A stretch of DNA of 64,000 nucleotides from Anolis carolinensis (taxonomy: Eukaryota). The translations under genes were made by a program, and so were the position numbers. Shown one piece after another: positions 9,001 through 58,802 of this stretch (its first letter is position 1; each line of letters begins with the position of its first letter). The stretch is from contig NC_085841.1 in NCBI RefSeq assembly GCF_035594765.1, positions 239,340,689-239,404,688 of the forward strand, written 5' to 3'. The notes under the pieces are model-generated. The model saw nothing but the letters and a program-made list of their open reading frames with translations. It had not been told where the DNA came from and did no database searches.

Positions 9001-9737
9001 AATCACACACACACAGAGTGATCAAGAGGCGAACCAGCCTCCGTTGTCCGCAGGAGCTCATTTCCAGAGTCATTACAGTCTGAAAAGGGTCCCATCAGGT
9101 ATTCCGCCTGCTCAGCACATTTATTTCCCCAAACCACAGCAGGGATTTGTGATTTTCAGACTCAATATTAGACCAAGCCCAGAGCTGGCTCATTCCACCC
9201 AGTGGGAAGCTTCCCTGTCAGTGCAGGCAGAACAATACCAGAAAGTGCAGAGAGGATGGCAGAGTGGGTTGCTAGTGGTAGTGGGACAGTGGTAGTGCCA
9301 CCCTGGCACTCACTAAGTTGGAAGCAAAGTATTCTTGACGCCGGAGAAAGTTGGAGAAAGCTCCTCATCTCCAAACCACTGAGGGTGTGTAAGTACTGAA
9401 ATCACTAAGAGAGCTTGTGGCCTTCCTCTCACAACTTATACATTACACATTTCCTGCCAAACTCTTCATGCCATGCTCACGCCTACTCAAGAAATGAAAG
9501 GATTGTCCAGACTCTGAAGTACGCAGGTGATTCCCAATGAGTGCCCAGCCAACTTATATGCGCTATAAGTTAGCCTGGTCTACAATCACTTATTTTCTTG
9601 AGCAGCTCATGTCCATCAAAAGGTTATCTCCTAGAATGGACCTTATTAGGACAAAAGTTCAAAACTACATGGAAGTTGGGTGCTAACAACTCATTCACTT
9701 AAGAAGAGAAGGAAGAGCAGGAAGAGCAAGTACTCAC

Positions 9738-10313
9738 CACTGTGAAGTTCTCTGCTGAGCAGTTCTCTCCACTGAAGCTGCAATTCTTGAGCATGTCATC
9801 AAGCTGGTGCCCAGTGCGGTTGACAATGTCAGCCATGTCTGGGTCTGGATAGAGCAGGTCTGAGGCCCTGTGTCCATCTCGGTCCTTGGGGGGCAACCCA
9901 GTCATGTTGGCCAGGTGGAAAATGTCGGCGTCAGTAAGAGCCGAGTGACGGAAGCGATTGATGTTGCAGATGGTGACGGCCGGGAAGACCATCCTTTGGG
10001 TGGCTTCCTCGTCCAGGGTGGTGACGTGGGGGTGCTCCAGGTAGAAGAGTGCCGACCGGGCCGCTTGGTACAGGAAGAAGGCCAGGGAGGCCGCAAAGGC
10101 CAGGGCCCAGAGGGCCTGCCGGACCCCCAGTCGCCCCGAGCGGCAAATGTGGCCGAAGCCGTGCAGGGTGCTGGCCCCGGCGAAGGCGGCCAGGTCCCGG
10201 CGGTGTGGCCGTCGAGGCTCTTCTAGCAAGCTCTCCTTGTCCCCTTCCTCTTTCGCCGCCTGCTTCTCATCCTCCTCTGCAAATTTGATTTTGCAGACAA
10301 TCTCAATCGGCAT
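9738..10313 (-). CDS. ASIC4: Acid-sensing ion channel 4, first coding exon (192 codons); the gene continues leftwards beyond the window
   Basis: Translation starts MPIEIVCKIKFAEED and contains STLHG (pre-TM1 HG motif), TM1 ALWALAFAASLAFFLYQA and FPAVTICNINRFRHSALTDADIFHLANMTGLPPKDRDGHR, all typical of vertebrate ASIC4. ATG at 10313-10311; phase-0 donor GTG|GTGAGTA after ENFTV (intron begins at 9737). No further exon recognised in 1-9737. Confidence 0.96.
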
Positions 10314-11800
10314 TTGTGCCGAGGCACCAGGCAGCACGCTACCCCCCCAGCGAGGGGAGGCAGCGGGAGCCTGGGGTGCCCGGCACCGGCCGCTCTCCGC
10401 CTGATGCTGCAGGACGCCCCTCAGTCAGGAAGCCCAGCAGAAGAGGAGCAGGAGGAGCAGGAGGACCGGGCAGGAGCCTGGCCCTGCTCTCTCTGGAGCT
10501 CCCGCTGCCGCTTGGCTCTTCTTGTCAGACTAGTGATCTCCTCCTGGAGCTTCTGCCGCCTTCTTATCTGCACAAGCCCAGCTGCCAGAGCTGCCCGGTG
10601 GTGCCGCTGCGTGTGCCGCTCCTCCGCTCGCCCGGTTAAGACCCCACCAGGCACAGGCAGCATTTAGGCATCGTGTGCTCATAAAATCCAGGGGATACTT
10701 AATAATTCAAGGCATGTCAACATTATTTCATCCTCAAATAAAAAGAGGAGGGGGAGGAAAGAGCGGGAGGAGGAAGGCAGAGCCCGCTCTCTGGAGTGAG
10801 GCTGGAGCCACTTGTTTGAATGGCTCGCAAGCTGGCAAAGTCTATGCCAACCCAAGAAGGCGGCAATAGAGACCGACGGGCTTCCCTCCCTCCGACGTGG
10901 GCTTTTCTGGCTTGACGCTCCCCTTTCTTGGCTTGCTCGACACCCACTTCCTCGCTGGGTCCCTTTCCCGGTGGTGCCCCCCGACGGGCGGAGAGCTCCC
11001 GCTTAAAACCTACCCCCGTACCTTCCTTCCTTTCCGGCGGACCTTCAACGGCTCCTTGCCAAAGACTGAAGCGGAAGAAGGAAAAGGAAGAGAAGGAAAA
11101 AGTTGAGAGAGGGAGAAAGCGGCGGAGGGGGAAGGAGGGAGGGAGCGACGCAAGCAGCTCCGGGTGGGGGAATCCTCCTCGCGCGTCGCCGGCGAGTGGT
11201 GCCCGGCCCAATGGGCAGCCACGCCACGCGCCGCCCGCTCACTCGTTCGCCCCCCCCCCGCACCTCCAGGGCAGACTAATTGGAGCAGGCGGGGCCCAGG
11301 AAGGCGGGGAGGGGAGCGGAAGCGCGGAGGAGACGCCCCCTCCCGCGATCAATCGATCCCGCTCCCCGCGGAACAAACAAGAGGCAAAAAGTGAATTGAT
11401 TGGCGGAGGGAAGGATAGAGAGGGGGGGGGGAGGGATGGAAGGCTGCGCAGCCGGCGGGACCAGGGCGGCACTCAAGGCAGCCCGCTCGCCTGCCTTCCC
11501 GCTGCACCATTGATCACTCCTCCGCTCTGCGCGCCCAGCCCCGTTGGAGGAGGCTCTTTGGTGGCTCCCGTCCGAGGGAAGCCCCCGAGGGAGCCCCCTT
11601 GGCGCAGGGCCACCTCCGCCGCTACGCCAGGGCCGCCGGGCAGCCCCAGGCCACGTGACCCCCCAGTGGGGCGGGGCGGAGCGGAGCAGAGACGGAGGGA
11701 AAAGGACAGGAGGATACGGAGGGCCCGGGGCCCGATGGTGGTGGAGTCTCCTCCTCTGGAACATTGTCATCCGCGGCTGCATGGCCATCTGTCGGGGGTA
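9980..11800 (-). promoter_or_regulatory. CpG island / ASIC4 promoter and 5' UTR
   Basis: Abrupt GC- and CpG-rich block over and upstream of exon 1. Minus-strand CCAAT boxes (ATTGG near 11279 and 11399) and a GC box GGGGCGGGG near 11668. The TSS cannot be determined from sequence. Confidence 0.8.
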
Positions 11801-12047: not shown

Positions 12048-12358
12048 GGAGCTCCGGTGGCGAAGTGCTGTTGAATTTACAGACCGAAAGGTCGCAGGTT
12101 CAAATCCCGGGAGCGGAATGAGCGCCCGCTGTTAGCTCCAGCTTCTGCCAACCTAGCAGTTCGAAAACATGCCAATGTAAGTAGATCAATAGGTATCGCT
12201 CCAGTGGGAAGGTAACGGCGCTCCATGCAGTCATGCCGGCCACATGACCTTGGAGGTGTCTACGGACAACGCCGGCTCTTGGGCTTAGAAATGGAGATGA
12301 GCACCAACTCCCAGAGTCAGACATGACTGGACTTAACGTCAGGAGAAACCTTTACCTT
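12048..12358 (+). mobile_element. Sauria SINE (tRNA-derived), near full length, nested in Penelope
   Basis: 5' ggagctccggtggcg, B-box-like ggttcaaatcc, core gcagttcgaaaacatg..gtagatcaataggta, (ACCTTT)n tail. 12-bp TSD TACTGGAGGTTT at 12036-12047 and 12359-12370. Confidence 0.9.
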
Positions 12359-14299: not shown

Positions 14300-14992
14300 T
14301 ACCTACCAGTATTTTTTTTTTAAAAAAATCTAAAATCAGGACAGTAAATAAAGAACAAGACTCAGAAGACAGAGGAATTCCAGACAAGAAACAATCAGGG
14401 CCAGCTAACACCCCCCAACAAAGGATTCCCCCAGGCAGTAAGCAGCCAGACCTCGAAGCTGAAAGGCTAATCAATCAAGGTGGCCAATTGCAACATTCAC
14501 ACTTGCCTCAGGCAGACAAGAGTTCTTTCTCCCACCCTGGACCTTCCACAGATATATAAGCTCCACTTTCACAGTTTTTCACCCAGGCAGATAACAGGCA
14601 GGCTTTGAAGCTGCCAGGATATTCAATGCTAATCAAGCTGGCCAATTGCAACATTCACACTTGCCTCAGGCAGACAAGAGTTCATTCTCCCACCCTGGAA
14701 CTTCCACAGATATATAAGCTCCACTTGCACAGTTTTTCACCCAGGCAGGAAACAGGCAGGCTTTGAAGCTGCCAGGATATTCAATGCTAATCAAGCTGGC
14801 CAATTGCAACATTCACACTTGCCTCAGGCAGACAACAGTTCTTTCTCCCACCCAGAGATATATAAACGCCACTTGACTATTTTCCAATATACCTCACAAC
14901 CTCTGAGGATGCCTGCCATACATGTGGGTGCAATGTCAAGAGAAAATGCTTCTGGAACATGGCCATACAGCCCAGAATACTCACAGCAATCC
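14300..14992 (+). mobile_element. Penelope-like 3' fragment with an internal 158-bp triplication
   Basis: Collinear with 12810-13190; ggccaattgcaacattcacacttgcctcaggcagacaa recurs at 14482, 14640 and 14798; ends in a decayed pLTR/hammerhead motif. Confidence 0.85.
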
Positions 14993-19047: not shown

Positions 19048-19360
19048 GGGTTACATAAACCACTGAGCTGCTGAACTTGTTGACAGAAAGGTTGGCGGTT
19101 CGAATTTGTGGAGTGGGGTGAGCTCCTGTTAGACCTAGCTTCTGCGACCCTCGCAGTTCGAAAACATGCAAATGTGAGTAGATCAATAGGTACCGCTCCA
19201 GTGTGAAGCTAACGGTGCTCCATGCAGTCATGCTGGCCACAGGACCTTGGAGGCGCCTACGGACAACGCTGGTTCTTCGGCTTAGAAATCGAGATGAAAA
19301 CCAGCCCCCCCGAGTCGGGCACAATTAGACTTAAATGTTAAGGGGAAAACTTTACCTTTA
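19048..19360 (+). mobile_element. Sauria SINE, 5'-truncated
   Basis: Collinear with 12048-12358, including ggttcgaat, gcagttcgaaaacatgcaaatgtgagtagatcaatagg and the actttaccttta tail. Confidence 0.88.
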
Positions 19361-34997: not shown

Positions 34998-35786
34998 CAA
35001 CAAGGACAAATGTAAAAAGAAATGAAATGGAAATGTACAGAATGGGTGATGCCTGGCTTGACAATAGTCCATGTGAAAAAGATCTTGGAGTCTTTGTGGC
35101 AAAAAAGCCAATGGGATTTTGGCCTGCATAAATAGGAATATAGTATCTAGATCCAGGGAAGTCATGCTACCCCTCTATTCTGCCTTGGTCAGACCACACC
35201 TGGAATACTGTGTCCAATTCTGGGCACTGCAATTGAAGGGAGATGTTGACAAGCTGGAAAGTGTTCAGAGGAGGGCAATTAAAATGATCAAGGGTCTGGA
35301 GAACAAGCCCTATGAGGAGCGGCTTAAAGAGTTGGGTATGTTTAGCCTGCCGAAGAGAAGGCTGAGAGGAGACATGATAGCCATGTACAAATACATGAAG
35401 GGAAGTCATAGGGAGGAGGGAGCAAGCTTGTTTTCTGCTGCCCTGGAGACTAGGACGTGGAACAATGGCTTCAAACTACAGGAAAGGAGATTCCACCTGA
35501 ACATTAGGAAGAACCTCTTCACTGTGAGAGCTGTTCGGCACTGGAACTCTTGGTTGAGGCTCCGTCTTTGGAGGCTTTTAAGCAGAGGCTGGATGGCCAT
35601 CTGTCAAGGGTGCTTTGAATGTCATTTTCCTGCTTTTTGGCAGGTGGTTGGATTGGATGGCCTGTGAGGTCTCTTCCAACTCTATGATTCTGTCAGGGCT
35701 GCTTTGATTGTGCTTTTCCTGTATGGCAAGGGGTTGGACTACATGGCCCATGTGATCTATTCCAACCCTATGATTCTATGATTCTA
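34998..35786 (+). mobile_element. CR1 LINE 3' fragment
   Basis: ORF 35119-35667 ([65 protein letters not shown]) is the CR1 ORF2 C-terminus; duplicated 3' end with (ATTCTATG)n tail. Confidence 0.93.
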
Positions 35787-37217
35787 CCAGTATTTTAATG
35801 GGAAGTGTGGGTCTGCTTTTGGCTGATGAAATAAGTCAGGTTAATTAAGATTGTTCTTGTTGTGTGCCTTCAAGACATTTCAGACTTAGGGTGACCCTAA
35901 ATCTAAAAGTTAGGGCCTGGGCCAGGTAAATGGCTTTGGAGGGCTGCATCCATCCCTTGGGCCTTAGTTTGGGGACCTCTGGTCTATCAATTTGACTTTG
36001 GGCTGTTGATTAATCCTCTGCTGATGTTTGCGGGTCAAGACTTCTGACAAGTGACAGAAGAATGTTGAGAGAACTTGCATTTGGTTCATGATTGGTGGAG
36101 AGATTGTGAATGACAACATATTCTTTGGAAGTGTGGGAGACCACCAAAATTATTCAACACCTTATGAGTTTCACAATTGGTGACATACATTGGGAGATTG
36201 AAAAGCACTGTTATCATCAGAGCACTGGAAGAAAGGACAGATAGTGCTTATTATATAATGCAACACCCATACCCACATCACTGGTATCTACCTGCATCCA
36301 ACAAAATATGTCCTCTCTAGGAATTTTCTAGATCCTACAGGCAATGCTTGGTATGCTTCGGCTAGAAGTTACCAGAGAGTTGTACTGGCAAATTCCTATA
36401 GAAGATACCTCTCTGAAAATTTTCTAGGTCCTCCAGGGTGACTCTATGGTAACATCCAGCAGAAATCGTTAATTTTACTAGGGTTTGTTATTATCCATTG
36501 TTTCCTGTTTCCATGGTAAGTTCAAGAACGTTTCCCTTGTAGATACAGGAAGTTTACTGTATATACTAGGCTTGAGTGATCCACGAAGAAATTGATTCTA
36601 AACTCGTTTCAAAAGTGGAGGGGGGTAGCGTTTCGTTTCTGTGATTAATTCCGAATTTTGCCCCCCCAAAAATTCGAAATTAACGAAAATTCGTTATTTT
36701 CAAAATTAGTTCGTTAATGGCGGACGCGCATGCGCAGTGGCCCAAAACAGCCCAAGGGGGGGGGGGTTTATGGGGCTCTCCTGCACTCATTTTTTCAGCT
36801 ATACTGATCAAATTTGGTACAGTGGGAGAACACAATCCACCCTGCTTGCTCGTTAAATTGCAGAGCGTTTGCCCTTTCCTAAGATTTATTGTGCAATTTC
36901 ATAGTTCATATAAAAAAACTTTATTTAACAATTGCAGAAATCTGTTCCTGCTTTTGAATTGTTATTTCCTGTTCAATAGGGTTCCTTCACTGTGAAAGTC
37001 CTTCTTCTACTTGTGTAACATTGTTTCAGTGCACGTAAATCTGTCAAAATGTTAGGACATTGGTGGCCATTGGCCAAGAGACACATTGTGCTGCCATGCG
37101 CAATGACTTTCCCCAGGCATCCAGATAGGAGGCCATTATACCACAGTGGTCAAGCCCCTCCCCCTTCCAATAAATGTAAGATTTCTGCGACGTTGGTTTG
37201 ATTTATCACCTGATGGC

Positions 37218-38174
37218 AAAATGGGGTCCCAAGCTCCACTCACCAGGGGGGCCGGCCACCGTTGGCCGGCCCCACGCCACCACCCCACCACCCAAGGGGA
37301 AGGGCGTGGCGCCTTTGAGGCAGCTAGTGAAAAGGGGTCCCAAGCCCCACTCACCAGGGGGGCCGGCCACCGTTGGCCGGCCCCACCCCACCACCCAAGG
37401 GGAAGGGCGTGGCGCCTTTGAGGCAGCTAGTGAAAAGGGGTCCCAAGCCCCACTCACCAGGGGGGCCGGCCACCGTTGGCCGGCCCCACGCCACCACCCC
37501 TCCACCCAAGGGGAAGGGCGTGGTGCCTTTGAGGCAGCTAGTGAAATGGGGTCCCAAGCTCCACTCACCAGGGGGGCCGGCCACCGTTGGCCGGCCCCAC
37601 GCCACCACCCCACCATCAAAGGGGAAGGGCGTGGTGCCTTTGAGGCAGCTAGTGAAAAGGGGTCCCAAGCCCCACTCACCAGGGGGGCCGGCCACCGTTG
37701 GCCAGCCCCACGCCACCACCCCACCACCCAAGGGGAAGGGCGTGGCGCCTTTGAGGCAGCTAGTGAAATGGGGTCCCAAGCTCCACTCACCAGGGGGGCC
37801 GGCCACCGTTGGCCGGCCCCACGCCACCACCCGTCCACCCAAGGGGAAGGGCGTGGCGCCTTTGAGGCAGCTAGTGAAAAGGGGTCCCAAGCCCCACTCA
37901 CCAGGGGGGCCGGCCACCGTTGGCCGGCCCCACGCCACCACCCCACCACCCAAGGGGAAGGGCGTGGCGCCTTTGAGGCAGCTAGTGAAATGGGGTCCCA
38001 AGCTCCACTCACCAGGGGGGCCGGCCACCGTTGGCCGGCCCCACGCCACCACCCCACCACCCAAGGGGAAGGGCGTGGCGCCTTTGAGGCAGCTAGTGAA
38101 ATGGGGTCCCAAGCTCCACTCACCAGGGGGGCCGGCCACTGTTGGCCGGCCCCACGCCACCACCCCACCACCCA
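37218..38174. repeat. GC-rich tandem array, 111-bp unit, ~8.7 copies
   Basis: gaggcagctagtg at 37317, 37420, 37531, 37642, 37753, 37864, 37975 and 38086 (one unit is 8 bp shorter). Confidence 0.97.
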
Positions 38175-38544
38175 TGACATCTCACCCAGCACTGGCCATT
38201 TCTGCCAAGCAGCAGGAATTTCCTTCTTGATTGTCTCTCTCATACCACAGTGTTTGTTGCATCACCCTGGCCAATCACAAACAAGATCCAAGCCTTCCGT
38301 TTGTCTGGGCACCACACTCGCATCAAACGTTGAAAAACTTGTTGAGATCCCCCAGGTGGGCTCCATTCCACCATGTTTCCTAACCAGACTTCTGTGTCAA
38401 CCAGACCAGAGCCCCAAAGTCTCTAGCCGCCAAAAAGGCACACTCCCTGACAGCAAACCGTCTGCGGCCCTGGCCGCAGCCCTACTGGATGGACACAAGC
38501 AAGCTGGCAGTCCGCAGGGTAGTCGTGGCCACCATCACATCAAC

Positions 38545-38945
38545 AATTATAATAATAATAATAACAACAGTAAGATCTTCATTTGTATTCCCCGCCCCAT
38601 CTTCCCGGAGGGACTCTGAGCGGCTTCCATGGGGCATGCCCGTCAACAATACCATGGCAGCAATTAAAAATATATATATATAGTAAAAAAAATGTTGCAT
38701 CAATAACACATAAAATAAAAAAGCTGTCACAGTCAGCATACAGCATTACCCGATTAAAAAACAGTGGTGTAAAAACACGGCTCTGGGCCGAGGGCTGAAT
38801 ACTTCAACAGAGATGAGGTAGTTTGACAGTTAAAAATCAATACAGTGCGAAATACTCTTGGCCTGGCAACCAATTCTTCAACTGGCAGCGATCCACCCCA
38901 CAGTCCTCGAAGGCTTTTTGGAAGTGGAAGGTTTTAAGGCTCTGA
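38545..38945 (-). mobile_element. L2-like LINE 3' fragment nested in the hAT
   Basis: Reverse strand aagccgctcagagtccctccgggaagatggggcggggaatacaaat followed by (TTA)n, as recalled for squamate L2 3' ends. Confidence 0.55.
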
Positions 38946-40614
38946 TGTTAGGTTCATGTTTCTATGGAGCTGCACAAGAGGGAAGACTTGTGTGTGTCTG
39001 GTGTTATTAAAGATCTCTAGCAGCTGAGCTGGAAAGAGGGATATGACTTCTGTTGGTATACAGTTTCAGTAAAGTTGTGGATGTAAAAAAATGAAAGATA
39101 CTGTCGTATGGAGTAGAAATGAATCCAAAGAACTAAAAAATAACACAAATGTTGAGACAAAGGAAACCATGAAGACATAACTCATTGTTTTTAATAGCAA
39201 TACAGAGTTTCTGAGTGCTTTGTTTCTCTACTTATGGGTCTGCGGAGGATTAGCATCACATACTTCCCCTCTGTGTCTTATCCTCTCAGACACACGCATA
39301 GAGAAAAAACTTGTCGCAGACAATGGCTGGGATCCATTTAAAAAAGGTTTATCCCAGTCAATGTAGGATTTCAGTTATCCCATATTGTAAAAGTATTGTA
39401 AAGGGGTTGGAGATAAATAAAATGTTTCCGTTATCCTAAAGGACAAGAGGCTTTAGGCAGGGTGTCCCACATATAACGATGGCTGGGTAAACTAATTTGG
39501 CTTGTAAGCCACCTTTCGTCTCATCCGTCAAAACACAGTCCTCATTATCAAATACAAAACGCTAAGAATTGTCCTGGACTGTTTCAGCACAAGTGTTAGA
39601 AAAGTGCACCTGATACGTTTGCACAGCAGACATTTCTGCAAGTACCATAATATTTTAAGATGTCAAGACATAAAATTATTTTATTTATTTCATTTTAAAA
39701 AAATAAATCTAATTTTTTTTTTAATTTTCTCCTCATGTTGCTTGGGCCGCTGCCCCAAGTAATCTGGACCGAGTCCACGCAGGGAGATGTTGTCGGGAAA
39801 TAGTAATTTTTTTAATCATTTAACATTGATTGTTTTAATAACTCTCACATAGTCCTCCTCGCTTCAAAGGGATTTCTGATAGTCCAGGACCGGAAGTTTG
39901 GTCTCGAGGAAGCATATTCTCTGATCGGTCAATCAGCAAGCTGCTGCAAGGGGTCACACCATCGTTGGCCATGTTGAATACTCTCTTCAAAGCCTTGAAC
40001 TGCTTGGAGGGTAATTAGTGGAATGAGCTGGGTTATTTGGGAATTCCAAGTCACCTTGTCTGTCCCACGAAAAGTGTTTGTTGACATGCTGGGAACAGAA
40101 AACGGATCAACCACCGTTTTAATGATTGGGAACGGGTTGCGGCAGGGCCGCATAAGTTCAGCCTCTGGAATCATCTACTTGTTTGTGTGGAACATTACAT
40201 GCGACATGCGTGCCTAGAGGACCTGTAGGCAGGATTTGAAATTTATGGAAGGCACATTTACAACCTATGGCATGAGATTACAGGCTGCTGGCTGAAAGAG
40301 ATTAGGGGCAGAGGAGCCTTCTCTCAAAGGTGAAAGAAGAAAGGACCTAAGCTTGGTTGTAAGAGAAGGAAGCCAAAGGGAACCACACACACAGATTAAT
40401 AACTGTCAACAACATGGATTGGATGTCGACGGCTTTACAGACGTTTTATTTATTCTTGCGACATATCACTGTAGGTGCGGACTGTGGCCTGCAAGTTCGT
40501 TGAGGTTTTGCAGAGCTATGTCCACACTAGACAAAATAAGGGCAGAGACTTCACCCAAACATAGGAGGACCGCATACTCACATTCTCATCGCAATGCCAT
40601 CGCCCAGAAACCTG

Positions 40615-40760
40615 AGGATGTGAGAGCTTGACCGTAAGGAAGGCAGAGCGTGGGAAGAATGGCACTTTTGAAAATAATTGCTTTTTGAAAAACAAGACAG
40701 TGCCTGGGAGTGTTAGAAGATCCAACTGGTCCATCCTCCATGTTTTAATGCCCGTCCGCT
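40615..40760 (+). mobile_element. RTE/Bov-B fragment nested in the hAT
   Basis: ggatgtgagagcttgaccgtaaggaaggcagagcg..gaagaatggcacttttgaa..agatccaactggtccatcctcca aligns with the copy at 58406-58530. Confidence 0.75.
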
Positions 40761-40900
40761 TCAAGGAGGGCATAGCATCAGGATGGCATGGACTTGAAGG
40801 AAATGTCGCCGTTGTTTTCCGACAGGGAATTCTTTTGTGAATCCGTCCGAGAGTTCTCCATAGATCGGAGAAGACTACAAGTCTTAGCTCAGAGTGTAAG

Positions 40901-42520
40901 ACTTTCTGCGGTGTGATTCCACCCTCTTCTATCGTCCTACCAACAAACAGAACCTGCGCCCACAGGTCACTAGCAGCCGCAAAGGCACACGCCCTGACGG
41001 GCAAACGGCACCGTCCTCGGGCGCGGACAGAGGGCGAGGGGACCCTAAGGCGGCCGTCCCTCGGCAACAGCGTCGACAACCGCCTCTCAAGGCGATGGGA
41101 CAGTGGAAGAAGAAAATTTTGAAAAGTGGTGGACAAGGCCGAGGTGTCCAGCTTTCTGCGGTGTGATTCCACCCTCTTCTATCGTCCTACCAGCAAACCA
41201 GCAAAAAACAGTTCCCACGCCACAGAACCTGCGCCCACAGGTCACTAGCAGCCGCAAAGGCACACGCCCTGACAGGCAAACGGCTCTGTCCGGAACCCTA
41301 AGGCGGCTGTCCCGCGGCCACTGCGTCGACCACACCCGCTCAAAGCGATGGGACAGTGAAAGAAAACGAATTAGAGAAATGGTGTCCAAGGCTGAGGTGT
41401 CCAGCTTTCTGCGGTGCGGTGATTCCACCCTCTTCTATCGTCGCTGCCAACAAGCCAGCAAAAAGCACTTCCGAAGCCAGAGAACCTGCGCCCAGAGGTC
41501 ACTAGCAGCCACAAAGGCACACGCCCTGACGGGCAAACGGCACCGTCCGCGTGCGCGGCCAGAGGGCGAGGGGACCATAAGGCGGCCGTTCCGCGGCCAC
41601 AGCGTCGAGTACACTGCCTTTCAAGGCGATGGGACAGTGGAAGAAGAAAATTTTGAAAAGTAGTGGACAAGGCCGAGGTGTCCAGCTTTCTGCGTTGCGG
41701 TGATTCCACCCTCTTCTATCGTCCCTGCCAACAAGCCAGCAAATTGAAGTTCCCACGCCACAGAACCTGCGCCCAGAGGTCACTAGCAGCCGCAAAGGCA
41801 CACGCCCTGACGGGCAAACGGCACCGTCCTCGGGCGCGGACAGAGGGCGAGGGATCCCTAAGGCGGCCGTCCCTCGGCAACAGCGTCGACCACAGCCTCT
41901 CAAGGCGATGGGACAGTGGAAGAAGAAAATTTTGAAAAGTGGTGGACAAGGCCGAGGTGTCCAGCTTTCTGCGGTGCGGTGATTCCACCCTCTTCTATCG
42001 TCCCAGCCAACAAGCCAGCAAATTGAAGTTCCCACGCCACAGAACCTGCGCCCAGAGGTCACTAGCAGCCGCAAAGGCACATGCCCTGACGGGCAAACGG
42101 CACCGTCCTCGGGCGCGGACAGAGGGCGAGGGAACCCTAAGGCGGCCGTCCCTCGGCAACAGCGTCGACCACAGCCTCTCAAGGCGATGGGACAGTGGAA
42201 GAAGAAAATTTTGAAAAGTGGTGGACAAGGCCGAGGTGTCCAGCTTTCTGCGGTGCGGTGATTCCACCCTCTTCTATCGTCGCTGCCAACAAGCCAGCAA
42301 AAAGCACTTCCGAAGCCAGAGAACCTGCGCCCAGAGGTCACTAGCAGCCGCAAAGGCACACGCCCTGACGGGCAAACGGCACCGTCCGCGTGCGCGGACA
42401 GAGGGCGCGGGGAACATAAGGCGGCTGTCCCGCGGCCACTGCGTCGACCACACCCGCTCAAGCCGATGGGACAGTGATAGATGAAAATTTTGAGAAGTGG
42501 TGGCCAAGGCAGAGGTGTAC
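40901..42520. repeat. CpG-rich tandem array, ~279-bp unit, ~6 copies
   Basis: gtcactagcagcc at 40966, 41241, 41498, 41779, 42058 and 42337 (spacings 275, 257, 281, 279, 279). Confidence 0.96.
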
Positions 42521-43072
42521 TAATTCATGCGGCAAGACACATCCACAAAGGTTCAGATGGAGCGTTATCTCTGTAAAGTGGGACTCTGCCGTATTCCTTC
42601 ACCAAATATGTCTTACCGAAGGATCCACATCAATTATAACAATGTTATTTCTGTACAGGAACAGCCAGGATCTGGAGAAGACCTAACATTCATGGCTCAT
42701 TCCCGAAATATTTTTGGACAAAAAAAGGATAGAGATTTGATAGTAATCCGTTCTGAACCCAAAGCGGAAGCATTTCCTACCTTGGCTTTTATGGACTAAT
42801 TTCCCCAAGAATATCAGAATCATTATTACAGGAGACAAAACCTCTAGGAACCTCAGGGAATGGCCCCTAGAGATTGATTTACCCAAAAACGACAGTGGGC
42901 AACGGTGTGTGATGATAAAGACGAGAACGGAAGGGAAGAGAGGAAGGAAAGCATGGTAGGATAGAGGAGAGAGTTGTTGGACATAGGCCAAAGGGGCAAC
43001 CCCCCCACCCCCCAACAGAAATAGCCATAGTTAATCAGAAGCAGAGCAGCTTAAAGGAGGAGAAATGTTGTT

Positions 43073-45540
43073 CTAGGAGCCATCGGAGTCAAAATCCAAA
43101 TCGGGGAAATTCAACACGGGGAGGTTGGCCTTCAGGAAGACCAGTTTCTCTACTGTTTGAGGGTCCAGCAAGCCGCGGTGGGGCGTGACTACATCTCCCG
43201 CTAGGCTGAAGACCCTTTTGCTCTGCACGCTGGTGGGTGGACAGCTGAGGAACTGGCGGGCTACGTGCGACAGATCCGGCCACATGTGTTCACGTGAAGC
43301 CCAATAGGCCAATGGATCACAAGATATTATCTCAGGAGGCTCCTCAAAGTACCTGTTGACCGAGCCTTCGGCCGAGTCTACCTTTTGAGCAGAAGCCAGC
43401 AAAGAGGAATCTTCCGAGCAGGCTAGTATGGCCACCGTCTCTGCAAAGAAAGTGTTTCCTGGTCGCGCTGGAAATCCGTAACCCTACGGCAACCCCCTGC
43501 CGGCTCCCCGGGACTATCACTCTCGCCACTAGCGCTAGTGCTGGGGGTGGCAGGCATTTCTGGTAGAGGGAACGCTGTGCCCGTTTCCCCCACCCTGGCA
43601 GCAAAGACCTCCCTCACAAGTTTAACTAGTTGGGCCTTCCATACGGTAAACTCTTTTGGGCAGACGTTGTACTTTAGCCGTGGATCACACAAGGCCGCCA
43701 GCATATGGACCTTGCTGGAAAGAAGTGGCTCAAGGCGTTTCCGTACAGCAAAGGACAACCTCCTCACCACCTCCTGGACCGGCGGTGTCAGTGGTCCAGC
43801 CAGGGAGTCCAGTGTTCGACCGGCCCCAAGCCTTTCTAGGTGCCTCCTTAGCCTCAAGACCATGGGCACTGCCTAGCTAAGAAGGGCTTTTGATTCCGAA
43901 AGGGTCTCTGTGGCATGTTTGAATGGCTTTAGTACGTCTACTAGCTGTGAGATGGTGTCCCACTCTTGCTTATTTGGAACAAGCTTGCTAACAGGCGCAA
44001 CCAATGTAAGGGAGATGCCGTGTACCGCCTTCTGCTGCTCGACCATGCGTTCGAGCATCTTATAGGTCGAATTCCACCGGGTTGAGACGTCCTGGAGCAG
44101 CTTGTGCTGCGGGAGGCCTTCAAGGCTCTGCCTGTCTCTCAGCTGCCGGGCTGCCTTGATGCTCCTGTGGAAGTAGCCCGCGATCTTCCTACAGCGCCCG
44201 ATCAGCAGGGAGATGTTTGCGGTGCTGGCCGGCTGCTCTTCCGGGCTCTTTAAATCTTCCTTGACGGTATTGTGAAGCAAGTGGGCCATGCAGGTGACAT
44301 TCAAAAACCCTGCACTTTCAACCGCTTTGATCATATTTTTACCAGCGTCAGTCACCATGAAGCCCCTCCTCATTTCTTCCGGCCTGCACCGCATCCACTC
44401 CCCCATCATGTTTTCCAGATAGCTGCAGATGGTCTCTGCCTTGTGATCACGATCAACTACCTCCAAAGTGAGGAGTGTCCAACGATGGGATGTATCCATA
44501 CTGCCTTCCTTCTCCCACCAATGTGCCGTGAGAGAGAGGTAGGAATGGCCTCCTCCCAAGCTTGACCAAATGTCAGAGGTAAAATGGATGTGTCCTCCCA
44601 TGGCGCTACGCAACATCTGGATAATGCGTTCCTTGCATCCCTCGTACAGTCCGGGAATAACTTTTCTGGAAAAGGTGTGACAAGAGGGGATTTTGTAGCG
44701 GGGGCACAGGCGTTTCATAAGGCGTACGAAGCCTTCTTGTTCAACCAGGCGGAAGGGATGGTGATCAAGGGCAATCATCTCTCCCACACTTTGGGTTATC
44801 TACTGGGGTGTGGGTAATGTTTCCCCCGTTCTCTTCCTGGCTAAAGGAATGGCCCAATCCTCCAAGGTGGACTGTGTCTGCCTTCCACCATCTTCACAAG
44901 GAGAACTTTGTGTGCTAATGCTGCCACTGGAAGGGCTTGCTGCTCCCCCTCCTACCGATATGGAGGGATGGTGTCGCTTCATGTGAGAGCTCAACCCCGA
45001 GGTCGCAAGATCTCTGCCTCTGCTGATATTTGCCCCACAGTGTCTACAAACTGCCAAAGTGGCACGCTGAGTGTGGACATGGAAATGGTCCCAAATATAT
45101 GACCTTGGCCTCCCCACAGCCACTGTGCCGACGCCCACGGAGATAGGAGTCGTGGGCACCCTTTCAGCAGCATGAGAAAGTCTATGATTTGATGGTACTA
45201 CCTCCTCTACCTCCTCCTCACTGTCAGTAGCGGGTGGAGGGGTGGGGTTATCTAGATCCTCACTATCCACCACCTGTAGTTCCAGGACTGTAACACTTGT
45301 ATGTTCCATTGATCGTCCAGTTTTCTCGGCTCCAACCGACAACTGGCTCCGGGTGGAGGGCTGTGAACTTTCAGCAGTCGAACAGCCAGCTTCTTCATCA
45401 AGTCCACCCACTCCCATCGTTCCGCGTTCCAGACGGATGGGACCCACCCTAACTTTTTTGGCCCCCCACAGTGTCCGGGCAGTTGCTTGACCACTAGCAG
45501 AAATTGCTCCACCAGACCCGCGTTCAGCTGAACGCTTCAT
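43073..45540 (-). pseudogene. hAT transposase (BED zinc finger, DDE/RNase H-like core, C-terminal dimerisation domain), disrupted
   Basis: BED: RSYIWDHF..AVCRHC..TSGLSSHMKRHHP. Core: FTSDIWS, VTDAGKNM, CMAHLLH, DVSTRWNSTYKML. C-terminus: DPLAYW..WPDLSHVARQFLSCPPTSVQSKRVFS. In-frame TAG at 44800-44802 and 43873-43875, a frameshift near 43440-43490, first ATG at 45540. Confidence 0.95.
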
Positions 45541-45744
45541 GATAACGGGAGTGTTTTCAGGTAACAGAAGGGAGGAAGGTATTGTGTTACTGGGGGGAAA
45601 GATGTGTTGTTTCTTGATTGGCAATGTGTTCAGGGTCTATTAACTGCCGCAAACCCTTCTATTACAGTTGTTCTTATTGTTATACGTTAAAAAGGGGATA
45701 CCTGTATTTTCCAGACCTTGAGTTTATGCAAGCCCTACTTTGGC

Positions 45745-48378
45745 AAACTTTTGCCAATCTTGGCTTTTGATTCACAGAGGGCCCTAAACAGACAAACAGC
45801 CCTGCTAGCAGTAAAGGAGGCCAAATCAGGCAGGCTCCCTTATTTCCCAAAAAGGTGGTGTAGTTCTACAAAGGAGTATGGGAGGTGCAACCCTTTTGCC
45901 AAACTTGGCTTTTGATTCACAGCGTCCCTGGCACAGACAAACAGCCCTGCTTGAGCAGCCTAGGGCCAAAGCAGGCTACCTTGTTTCCCAAAAAGGAGGT
46001 GTAGTTCTACAAAGGAGTATGGGACATGCAACCCTTTTGCCAAACTTGGCTTTTGATTCACAGCGTCCCTGGCAGAGACAAACAGCCCTGCTTGAGCAGC
46101 CTAGGGCCAAATCAGGCTCCCTTGTTTCCCAAAAAGGAGGTGTAGTTCTACAAAGGAGTATGGGGGGTGCAACCCTTTTGCCAAACTTGGCTTTTGATTC
46201 ACAGCGTCCCTGGCAGAGACAAACAGCCCTGCTTGAGCAGCCTAGGGCCAAATCAGGCTCCCTCATTTCCCCAAAAGGAGGTGTAGTTCTACAAAGGAGT
46301 ATGGGAGGTGCAACCCTTTTGCCAAACTTGGCTTTTGATTCACAGCGTCCCTGGCAGAGACAAACAGCCCTGCTTGAGCAGCCTAGGGCCAAATCAGGCT
46401 CCCTCGTTTCCCAAAAAGGAGGTGTAGTTCTACAAAGGAGTATGGGAGGTGCAACCCTTTTGCCAAACTTGGCTTTTGATTCACAGCGTCCCTGGCAGAG
46501 ACAAACATCCCTGATTGAGCAGCCTAGGGCCAAATCAGGCTCCCTTGTTTCCCAAAAAGGAGGTGTAGTTCTACAAAGGAGTATGGGTGGTGCAACCCTT
46601 TTGCCAAACTTGGCTTTTGATTCACAGCGTCCCTGGCACAGACAAACAGCCCTGCTTGAGCAGCCTAGGGCCAAATCAGGCTCCCTTGTTTCCCAAAAAG
46701 GAGGTGTAGTTCTACAAAGGAGTATGGGAGGTGCAACCCTTTTGCCAAACTTGGCTTTTGATTCACAGCGTCCCTGGCAGAGACAAACAGCCCTGCTTGA
46801 GCAGCCTAGGGCCAAAGCAGGCTCCCTCGTTTCCCAAAAAGGAGGTGTAGTTCTACAAAGGAGTATGGGAGGTGCAACCCTTTTGCCAAACTTGGCATTT
46901 GATTCACAGCGTCCCTGGCAGAGACAAACAGCCCTGCTTGAGCAGCCTAGGGCCAAATCAGACTCCCTTGTTTCCCAAAAAGGAGGTGTAGTTCTACAAA
47001 GGAGTATGGGACATGCAACCCTTTTGCCAAACTTGGCTTTTGATTCACAGCGTCCCTGGCACAGACAAACAGCCCTGCTTGAGCAGCCTAGGGGCAAATC
47101 AGGCTCCCTTGTTTCCCAAAAAGGAGGTGTAGTTCTACAAAGGAGTATGGGAGGTGCAACCCTTTTGCCAAACTTGGCTTTTGATTCACAGCGTCCCTGG
47201 CAGAGACAAACAGCCCTGCTTGAGCAGCCTAGGGCCAAATCAGGCTCCCTTGTTTCCCAAAAAGGAGGTGTAGTTCTACAAAGGAGTATGGGACATGCAA
47301 CCCTTTTGCCAAACTTGGCTTTTGATTCACAGCGTCCCTGGCAGAGACAAACAGCCCTGCTTGAGCAGCCTAGGGGCAAATCAGGCTCCCTTGTTTCCCA
47401 AAAAGGAGGTGTAGTTCTACAAAGGAGTATGGGAGGTGCAACCCTTTTGCCAAACTTGGCTTTTGATTCACAGCGTCCCTGGCAGAGACAAACAGCCCTG
47501 CTTGAGCAGCCTAGGGCCAAAGCAGGCTACCTTGTTTCCCAAAAAGGAGGTGTAGTTCTACAAAGGAGTATGGGACATGCAACCCTTTTGCCAAACTTGG
47601 CTTTTGATTCACAGCGTCCCTGGCAGAGACAAACAGCCCTGCTTGAGCAGCCTAGGGCCAAATCAGGCTGCCTTGTTTCCCAAAAAGGAGGTGTAGTTCT
47701 ACAAAGGAGTATGGGAGGTGCAACCCTTTTGCCAAACTTGGCTTTTGATTCACAGCGTCCCTGGCAGAGACAAACAGCCCTGCTTGAGTAGCCTAGGGCC
47801 AAATCAGGCTCCCTTGTTTCCCAAAAAGGAGGTGTAGTTCTACAAAGGAGTATGGGAGGTGCAACCCTTTTGCCAAACTTGGCTTTTGATTCACAGCATC
47901 CCTGGCAGAGACAAACAGCCCTGCTTGAGCAGCCTAGGGCCAAATCAGGCTCCCTTGTTTCCCAAAAAGGAGGTGTAGTTCTACAAAGGAGTATGGGAGG
48001 TGCAACCCTTTTGCCAAACTTGGCTTTTGATTCACAGCGTCCCTGGCAGAGACAAACATCCCTGCTTGAGCAGCCTAGGGCCAAAGCAGGCTGCCTTGTT
48101 TCCCAAAAAGGAGGTGTAGTTCTACAAAGGAGTATGGGAGGTGCAACCCTTTTGCCAAACTTGGCTTTTGATTCACAGCGTCCCTGGCAGAGACAAACAG
48201 CCCTGCTTGAGCAGCCTAGGGCCAAATCAGGCACCCTTGTTTCCCAAAAAGGAGGTGTAGTTCTACAAAGGAGTATGGGACATGCAACCCTTTTGCCAAA
48301 CTTGGCTTTTGATTCACAGCGGCCCTCAAACAGCCCTGCTTGAGCAGCCTAGGGCCAAATCAGGCTCCCTTGTTTCCA
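45745..48378. repeat. Tandem array, 141-bp unit, ~18.7 highly similar copies
   Basis: gagtATGgg recurs every 141 bp from 45878 to 48275 (18 occurrences), giving the 47-aa periodic ORFs on both strands. Confidence 0.98.
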
Positions 48379-49111
48379 AAAACCCTTTTGCGTTGAAAAA
48401 AGAAAGAAGAAAGCCCACCCCGCCCGCAACTGGAAAAATGGCGCAGCAGAAAAACTGCAGGCCGGGTGGGAAAACGGAAAACGCCAATCTCGTGAGGAAA
48501 AAAACACCCACAGGCCCTTTGGAAAAAAATAAAAAAGAAACACCCAACAGTTTCCAAACCCACCCCACCCCACCTCACCCACTTAACCCTTTCTCCCGGT
48601 CTTCTAATCTGTAGCCTAGCTCTAGCTCAGACAGCCAAGGAAGCTGTAACGCAGCAATCTTTCCTGCCTGCCTGCGTGCCTGCCTAGAATCTCACTTCCA
48701 CCCTCTCCAGATTCCCGGTGCAAATGAGCCACGAGGCTCCCTGTGCTCGCTCTTTTCATTCAGGACGTACCAGCCCCTCCCCAGGGTTAAACGTGCTCTC
48801 TGATTGGCCACAAGCTGCAAATAACACGCTAGGTTGCCCCAGTGCACTTAAACAAGTTTGGGTGATTTGCAAAAGCTTTTTTTACCAACGAAAAAAACGA
48901 CGACATAACTAAAAACGGCCAGTCGCGGTTCGAAACCGCGATATCCAGACGTGTGGACAATCAAGGCCGTATATTGCTTCAAAAGTAACGAAAATAACGA
49001 ATTAATAACGGTTAACGGGGAAATCGAATTATTTGAGCAAGCCTAGTATATACACTGAAAACCTGGGGGCTGGGATCTTAAAGGAAGGTATCCAAGATAG
49101 AATGGTTAGAA

Positions 49112-49235
49112 CAGTGGTTCTCAACCTGGAGTTCCCAGATGTTTTTGGCCGTCAACTCTCAGAAATCCTAACAGCTGGTAAACTGGCTGGGATTTCTGAG
49201 AGTTGTAGGCCAAAAACATCTGGGAACCCCAGGTT
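49112..49235. mobile_element. hAT MITE (same family as 25001-25135), right end truncated
   Basis: cagtggttctcaacctggagttcccagatgtttttggcc...ggccaaaaacatctgggaaccccaggtt. Confidence 0.8.
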
Positions 49236-49261
49236 AAAAGGTCTTGAGAAAGTGTGCAAAG

Positions 49262-55952: not shown

Positions 55953-56668
55953 ATAGAATAATAGAATCACAGAGTTGGAAGAGACCTCATGGGCCATCCA
56001 GTCCAACCCTTTGACCAAAAGCAGGAAAATCGCACTCAAAGCACCCCCAACAGATGGCCACCCAGCCTCTGTTTAAAAGCCTCCAAACCTCCACCACACT
56101 CTGGGGCAGTGAGTTTTACTGCCAAACAGCTCTCACAGTGAGGAAGTTCTTACTAATGTTCAGGTGGAATCTCCTTTCCTGTAGTTTAAAGCCATTGTTC
56201 CGCGTCCTAGTCTCCAGGGTAGCAGAAAACAAGCTTGTTCTCTTCTCCCTATGACTTCCCCTCACATACTTATACATGGCCATCATGTCTCCTCTTAGCC
56301 TTCTCTTCTGAGGGTTAAACATGCCCAGCTCTTTAAGCCACTCCTCATATGGCTTATTCTACAGATCCTTGATCATTTTAATCATCATCCTCTGGACACA
56401 TTCCAGCTTGTCAACATCTCCCTTAAATTGCGGTGCCCAGAATTGGACACAGTGATTCCAGGTGTGGTCTGATCAAGGCAGAATAGATGGGTAGCATGAC
56501 TTCCCTGGATCTAGACACTATATTCCTATTTATTCAGGCCAAAATCCCATTGGCTTTTTTAGCTGCCGCATGACATTGTCGGCTCATATTTAATTTGTTG
56601 GCCACGAGGACTCCAATATTTTTTTTCACACATACTGCTAATCGAGCCAGGCATCCCCCATTCTGTAT
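55953..56668 (-). mobile_element. CR1 LINE 3' fragment
   Basis: Reverse-complement match to 35040-35690; ORF 56116-56322 [30 protein letters not shown]. Confidence 0.92.
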
Positions 56669-58319: not shown

Positions 58320-58802
58320 CCAGTTTAGATAAAATAGTGAAGACGAGGACACTGGCAATGAAGGTCCGCACAGTTAAAGCAATGGTATTCCCTGTAGTAA
58401 CTTATGGATGTGAGAGGTGGAACATAAGGAGGGCTGAGCGAAGGAAGAGAGACGCTTTTGAACTCTGGTGCTGGAGGAAAATTCTGAGAGTTCCTTGGAC
58501 TGCAAGGAGATCCAACCAGTCCATGCTCCAGGAAATAATGCCCGGCTGCTCTCTGGAGGGAAGGATATTAGTGGCGAATATGGAGTACTTTGACCGCATA
58601 ATGAGATGACAGGAAAGCTTAAAGAATATAAAGACGCTGGGGAAAATAGAAGGAAAAAAGAAGAGGGGTTGACCAAAGGCAAGATGGATGGATGGTATCC
58701 TTGAAGGGATTGGCTTGACCTTGAAGGAGATGGGGGTGGCAATGGCCAACAGGGAACTCTGGCATGAAGAGTTGGAAGCGACTGAACAAATAAACAACAA
58801 AA
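58320..58802 (+). mobile_element. RTE/Bov-B LINE 3' fragment
   Basis: KVRTVKAMVFPVVTYGCERWNIRRAERRKRDAFELWCWRKILRVPWTARRSNQS is the Bov-B-type ORF C-terminus; tail gcgactgaac..aacaacaa. Confidence 0.92.

Follow-up and report, generated by a model that had tools for sequence, protein, structure and literature searches.

The hobo_AC elements found in Anolis carolinensis, the green anole, belong to the hAT superfamily of DNA transposons and are known from ~290 copies at 1–2% divergence; those that carry a transposase measure 9–15 kb, which makes them the longest known hAT elements (Novick et al. 2010, Genome Biol Evol 3:1-14, PMC3014272). They have an 11-bp terminal inverted repeat (TIR), TAGGCTTGMTC, and an 8-bp target-site duplication (TSD), for which the non-autonomous derivatives give the pattern NTRNNYAN. 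Their length comes from incorporated genomic DNA with fragments of RTE Bov-B, CR1, Sauria SINE (short interspersed element) and Chapaev3, and since these transposable element (TE) fragments are older than the element itself, the authors infer that they were captured with genomic DNA and not inserted later. Copies recombine and quickly gain and lose DNA, with ~3 kb common to all full-length copies; recombinants with mixed ends are documented, and the elements multiply whatever they carry (PMC3014272). Here we describe an element of this kind in a 64,000-nt stretch of A. carolinensis DNA (contig NC_085841.1, positions 239,340,689 to 239,404,688 of the forward strand), hereafter the window, in which position 1 is the first letter. 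The element is very probably one decayed copy of the hobo_AC type, derived from a single insertion at this site. The giant size of anole hobo elements and their filler of captured old TEs have been known since 2010, so that the first-pass annotation of this DNA, which offered the architecture as new, had been anticipated: hobo_AC elements of 9–15 kb with captured DNA were already catalogued, an outcome that the annotation itself had listed among those counting against it. The same annotation had proposed a single very long hAT insertion with an interior made mostly of non-transposase DNA, and this is what the anatomy of the locus bears out.

To delimit the element we read its ends directly from the sequence. 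It spans 36567–49045, that is 12,479 bp between the duplications, a length within the 9–15 kb range of hobo_AC. The left end is TAGGCTTGAGT and the right end, on the forward strand, is ...GAGCAAGCCTA, which reads TAGGCTTGCTC inward. TIRs had been noted at both ends and are indeed there, perfect over 8 bp only (TAGGCTTG at 36567 and CAAGCCTA ending at 49045). Directly outside both ends stands the same 8-bp string, GTATATAC, the perfect TSD that the earlier reading had also described. These features match the family's diagnostics closely: the right terminus is an exact fit to the hobo_AC TIR, GTATATAC satisfies every constrained position of NTRNNYAN, and the left terminus agrees at 10 of 11 positions with the TIR of hobo group B, TAGGCTTGAGC. 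Taken with the transposase described below, which combines BED, DDE and dimerisation regions, the 8-bp TSD and the short TIRs followed by subterminal repeats give the features of the hAT superfamily. The subterminal repeats stand out strongly from their surroundings: the outermost 250 nt of each end have AACGA/TCGTT motifs at a density of 18 per kb (five in the first 250 nt of the left end), compared with 0.8 per kb for the interior and 0.35 per kb for the window outside the element. Subterminal binding repeats of hAT elements typically look like this, as in Ac and Hermes. For CpG, the observed/expected ratio reaches 0.65 in the left end and 0.87 in the right one, versus 0.13 and 0.33 in the 3.5-kb flanks, in agreement with the CpG-intact subterminal repeats noted at first pass. 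Together, the enriched motifs and the CpG-rich termini speak for a young element.

The transposase gene occupies ~2.47 kb of the minus strand, between an ATG at 45539 and a stop codon at 43073. Window-right is therefore the 5' end of the element, and the 141-bp array described below lies between this end and the start codon. Pfam detected a BED zinc finger (zf-BED, PF02892, E 1.1e-12) in the first piece of the gene and the hAT C-terminal dimerisation domain (PF05699, E 1.5e-16) in the last. Against Hermes transposase structures, the middle and last pieces gave matches with E values of 3e-10 and 1e-8. In the alignment with Hermes, the element's transposase has Asp at the positions of D180 and D248. 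The equivalent of E572 is Lys (codon 43219–43217), at a position occupied by Glu in all six relatives compared, four of them from Anolis. The reading frame carries two in-frame TAG stops (44802–44800 and 43875–43873) and, near 43465, a frameshift of 1 nt that shows up as a change of frame in a tblastn search with the A. carolinensis gene model P0042. Given the stops, the frameshift and the substitution of Lys for the catalytic Glu, this copy cannot make active transposase. It is non-autonomous, with both its catalytic triad and its open reading frame (ORF) broken, which bears on its activity and not on its family descent. The ~2.5-kb transposase announced at first pass is thus present at about that length but is not intact.

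To place the transposase among its relatives we ran a word search with a 304-aa core piece; the search covered proteins of 167–532 aa only. The best matches were one sequence at 75% identity, then 'ZBED4-like' models of Anolis sagrei and A. carolinensis and hAT-dimerisation proteins of A. carolinensis. These matches are 59–87% identical over the aligned parts, the ZBED4-like models 59–84%, while the next relatives, from a cordylid lizard, fishes and insects, fall below 40%. The only solved relatives found are the Hermes transposases; the closest proteins are the Anolis ZBED4-like models. As a side observation, the C-terminal 39 residues of P0042 match two other sites of the window (35431–35547 and 56113–56229) at 72–77%, showing that this tail comes from an unrelated interspersed repeat.

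Table 1. Parts of the hAT element and its flanking duplications, in window coordinates.
Feature	Coordinates	Strand	Basis
Left TSD, GTATATAC	36559–36566		Identity with 49046–49053
Element 3' end (window-left): terminus TAGGCTTGAGT and subterminal region with AACGA/TCGTT repeats	36567–37218	-	CpG, motif counts, TIR match
111-bp tandem array, 8.6 units, GC 70%, units 94–96% alike	37219–38174		Tandem Repeats Finder, unit BLAST
Non-repetitive filler ('cargo'), GC ~43%, with old repeat fragment at 40591–40770	38175–40901		Pfam, BLAST
279-bp tandem array, ~5.4 units and a degenerate edge unit, CpG observed/expected 0.85, units 80–95% alike	40902–42518		Tandem Repeats Finder, unit BLAST
Spacer downstream of the transposase stop codon	42519–43072	-	No domain, no repeat match
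hAT transposase pseudogene: BED finger, DDE core, hAT C-terminal dimerisation domain	43073–45539	-	Pfam, Hermes matches
Short leader, from the 141-bp array to the transposase ATG	45540–45747	-	Gene layout
141-bp tandem array, 18.7 units, units 95–98% alike, edge unit 89%	45748–48382		Tandem Repeats Finder, unit BLAST
Element 5' end (window-right): subterminal AACGA repeats and terminus TAGGCTTGCTC (inward)	48383–49045	-	CpG, motif counts, TIR match
Right TSD, GTATATAC	49046–49053		Identity with 36559–36566

Much of the interior consists of three tandem arrays, which we delimited with Tandem Repeats Finder and unit-by-unit BLAST. They sum to about 5.1–5.2 kb, or ~40% of the element, and the claim of more than 5 kb of arrays in three unit sizes was borne out, the units being 111, 279 and 141 bp long. 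All three are minisatellite-scale blocks of 1–2.6 kb. An inverted-repeat search found a 26-nt palindrome, GGGGCCGGCCACCGTTGGCCGGCCCC, in each 111-bp unit. The 111- and 279-bp units have a piece of 30–39 nt in common, in inverted orientation, and the sequence at 38405–38458 is a solo copy resembling part of the 279-bp unit. Within the 141-bp array we counted 23 variable columns, nine of them shared by several non-adjacent units and 14 singletons, and its edge units are the most diverged. Singleton differences amount to ~0.6% per unit in both the 141- and the 111-bp arrays. The variation in the 141-bp array is that of ordinary array turnover, and it does not tell growth before the insertion from growth after it.

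Searching for the units elsewhere, we found none outside the element within the 64-kb window. A word search with the ORF of the 111-bp array gave one diverged match, the A. carolinensis gene model P0075 (LOC134299277), which translates a diverged array whose period is likewise 37 aa (111 nt), so relatives of the 111-bp unit exist elsewhere in an anole genome. The ORF of the 141-bp array found no protein match in the word search, a blank of little weight. Turning to candidate motifs, the 141-bp unit resembles the right terminus (TAGGC-TGCTCAA, 12 of 13 positions with a gap); 9 of 300 shuffles reached an equal score, and the resemblance is not significant after six comparisons. A terminus-like motif in all three arrays was rejected, as the 111- and 279-bp units score below their own shuffles. 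Also rejected was a derivation of the 141-bp array from the SINE Squam1 or the Squam1-derived satellite sSat1Aca, since probes for both match nothing inside the element. Pfam matches on the array ORFs (AMMECR1, Tenascin EGF and AAA_lid) had either no single stretch that passed or tiny stretches only, and were set aside as artefacts of adding weak matches across repeats. We further observed that the 111-bp units (37219–38174) contain GC-box and CACCC-like strings, and that their TCACCAGGGGGGCC stretch bears what we take to be a loose resemblance to the CTCF core.

The remaining interior was searched for captured sequence. Sensitive BLAST against the rest of the window revealed one old interspersed-repeat fragment in the filler (40591–40770 versus 58379–58560, 69% over 182 nt) and, in the same comparison, no other interspersed fragment in the element. 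A divergence of 31% places the origin of this fragment long before that of the element, as the published account of hobo_AC cargo would have it. Pfam gave only noise on the 40 stop-to-stop frames of the non-array interior, with no reverse-transcriptase or endonuclease domain among them, and Rfam and tRNA scans of the element returned nothing inside it and no tRNA-like head. Squam1 probes likewise found no Squam1 piece within the element, and nothing in it matched the Squam1 SINEs of the window by BLAST. The latter are Squam1 (Sauria) copies at 12238–12316 and 19235–19262; the first agrees with the published consensus at all of 28 nt and with a second probe at 34 of 35 nt. The L2 and Bov-B labels given to the cargo at first pass were not confirmed, as the search turned up a single old fragment of ~180 nt and neither a reverse-transcriptase nor an endonuclease domain. 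The accompanying idea, that decayed cargo travels with the element, fared better: it agrees with the published conclusion for hobo_AC and with the one 31%-diverged fragment, and only the naming of that cargo as long interspersed elements went unconfirmed.

Three observations weigh against the assignment to hobo_AC. The left end departs from the hobo_AC TIR at positions 10–11, leaving 9 of 11 matching; the paper that describes the family makes no mention of tandem arrays or satellites (PMC3014272); and the closest A. carolinensis proteins in our length-limited search are 76–87% identical only. One could imagine a separate, undescribed hobo-like hAT family, or one from another anole species, that has only the terminal octamer in common with hobo_AC. 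The deviating left TIR would fit such a family, as would the 59–87% identity of the transposase pieces to the Anolis proteins found, none of which is near-identical. However, full-length hobo_AC transposases (~820 aa) were out of reach of a search covering 167–532 aa, and the material compared consists of pseudogene translations and gene models. A fit to hobo_AC is seen in the right TIR, the TSD pattern, the 9–15 kb size class and the architecture of the filler, and even a separate family would only add a sister lineage to a kind already known. We consider a separate family improbable. The two termini also carry different TIR variants (GAGT versus GCTC) and long arrays are difficult to assemble, which might suggest that the ends come from different hobo-type elements paired by chance, or that the arrays were collapsed or expanded by misassembly. 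An identical 8-bp duplication would arise by chance about once in 65,000, though, and this one fits the target pattern of the family; moreover, the window has no runs of N, and recombinant hobo elements with mixed ends are published (PMC3014272). An artefact of either kind thus seems extremely improbable.

A different question is whether the arrays came with the element. A shorter hobo-type element may have inserted here, its arrays then arising or expanding in place by slippage or unequal exchange, in which case other copies would not carry them. The few singleton differences between units of the 141- and 111-bp arrays imply that the last homogenisation was recent and could post-date the insertion, and hobo_AC copies are known for very fast gain and loss of DNA, with only ~3 kb shared by all full-length copies (PMC3014272); the lack of a protein match for the 141-bp array ORF points weakly the same way. 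On the other hand, the variant subtypes that several units share are scattered through the 141-bp array and edge units stand at 80–89%, which looks older, the 279-bp units differ by 5–12%, and a related array of 111-nt period exists elsewhere in A. carolinensis. Growth of the arrays at this locus is, on balance, unlikely, if less so than a separate family. We infer instead that the element brought both arrays and filler with it from its donor copy and did not acquire them at the locus.

The following history would account for a decayed hobo_AC-type copy at this site. A single cut-and-paste event would have inserted the element and duplicated the 8-bp target GTATATAC; the empty, pre-insertion site would accordingly read ...TTTACTGTATATACACTGAAAACC.... 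A hAT transposase is expected to bind the AACGA-type subterminal repeats and to cut at the TAGGCTTG termini. As the copy's own gene is dead, any further movement would take place only in trans, with transposase from an intact copy. Some 80% of the length would then be passive internal DNA, made up of the three arrays and ~2.7 kb of filler with at least one ancient repeat fragment. Following what has been published for the family (PMC3014272), this internal DNA would be genomic DNA that the element took up and that has since been copied with it. What we observed directly at the locus is how the element is built, which domains it encodes, where its gene is damaged and how its termini, TSD pattern and length agree with those diagnostic of the family; the steps of this history are a proposal built on these observations.

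Does such an element act as a satellite vehicle? In the trivial sense that arrays are copied at each transposition, this is plausible; in the interesting sense that free satellites derive from the element, it is unproven. A stronger version would have the arrays as conserved modules of a hobo_AC sublineage, with hobo transposition as the main route by which their units are seeded and some of them becoming free satellites. We regard this as a long shot. Within that version, the 141-bp array, upstream of the transposase, might carry a near-copy of the 5' terminus in each unit, and the GC-rich 111- and 279-bp arrays might be regulatory or bind transposase. Seeding of satellites by TEs is already known from insects and molluscs. 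If the arrays recur across copies and also occur free, hobo_AC would be a clean case of a vertebrate DNA transposon seeding minisatellites or satellites. As a discovery the present copy matters little: the arrays, ~40% of its length, are the only part that goes beyond the 2010 paper.

The rest of the window contains several unrelated features. Right beside the element, at 49112–49236, lies a palindromic miniature inverted-repeat transposable element of ~125 nt that starts CAGTGGTTCTCAACCT and matches the hAT-N1_AC/SPIN-type TIR (PMC3014272 Table 1). On both strands it also matches the Rfam models mir-5408, mir-3160 and mir-249, in each case under the gathering score. This element and the Squam1 pieces near 12.2 kb mark the genome as that of an anole. 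In an ORF on the minus strand at 9699–10337, Pfam recognised the N-terminal portion of the amiloride-sensitive sodium channel domain (ASC, E 1.2e-26); the ORF probably represents one exon of a gene of the ASIC/ENaC type, and the transposon is located ~26 kb upstream. Two tandem duplications were found outside the element, one of 158 bp x 2.4 at 96% (14473–14853) and one of 86 bp x 2 at 78% (35600–35777).

Finally, we compared the element with known systems. It resembles the Hermes, hobo and Ac elements and their transposases (PDB 2bw3, 4d1q, 6dww and 8edg) in its DDE core, C-terminal dimerisation region, 8-bp TSD and short TIRs. Those elements are ~3–5 kb long and have no large filler, whereas the anole element is filled and has a Lys as third catalytic residue and a broken frame. 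For the arrays, a parallel is found in Drosophila virilis, where tandem repeats inside the foldback DNA transposon Tetris gave rise to a satellite (PMC4079207). Tetris and the anole element are both DNA transposons with internal tandem repeats and hence able to plant arrays at new sites; they differ in superfamily and host, and free arrays have been demonstrated for Tetris while the anole arrays are known here from inside the element. The green anole itself has sSat1Aca, a 145-nt satellite derived from Squam1, a Sauria SINE (PMC10702118). It too is a TE-derived tandem repeat, from the same lizard and with a unit length near 141 bp, yet its sequence is unrelated to the 141-bp unit, and its probes match only the SINE copies at ~12.2 and 19.2 kb of the window. 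Closest of all is hobo_AC. From the published form of the family the present copy differs by its ~40% of tandem arrays, its inactivated transposase and a left TIR of the group-B variant. With hobo_AC and hobo-N (PMC3014272) it has in common termini of the form TAGGCTTG(M/A)(T/G)C, a TSD of the NTRNNYAN pattern and a length of 9–15 kb, and like hobo_AC it combines one hAT transposase gene of about 2.5–3 kb with a remainder of probably incorporated DNA, in which one old repeat fragment was recognised here, all within an element of young appearance.

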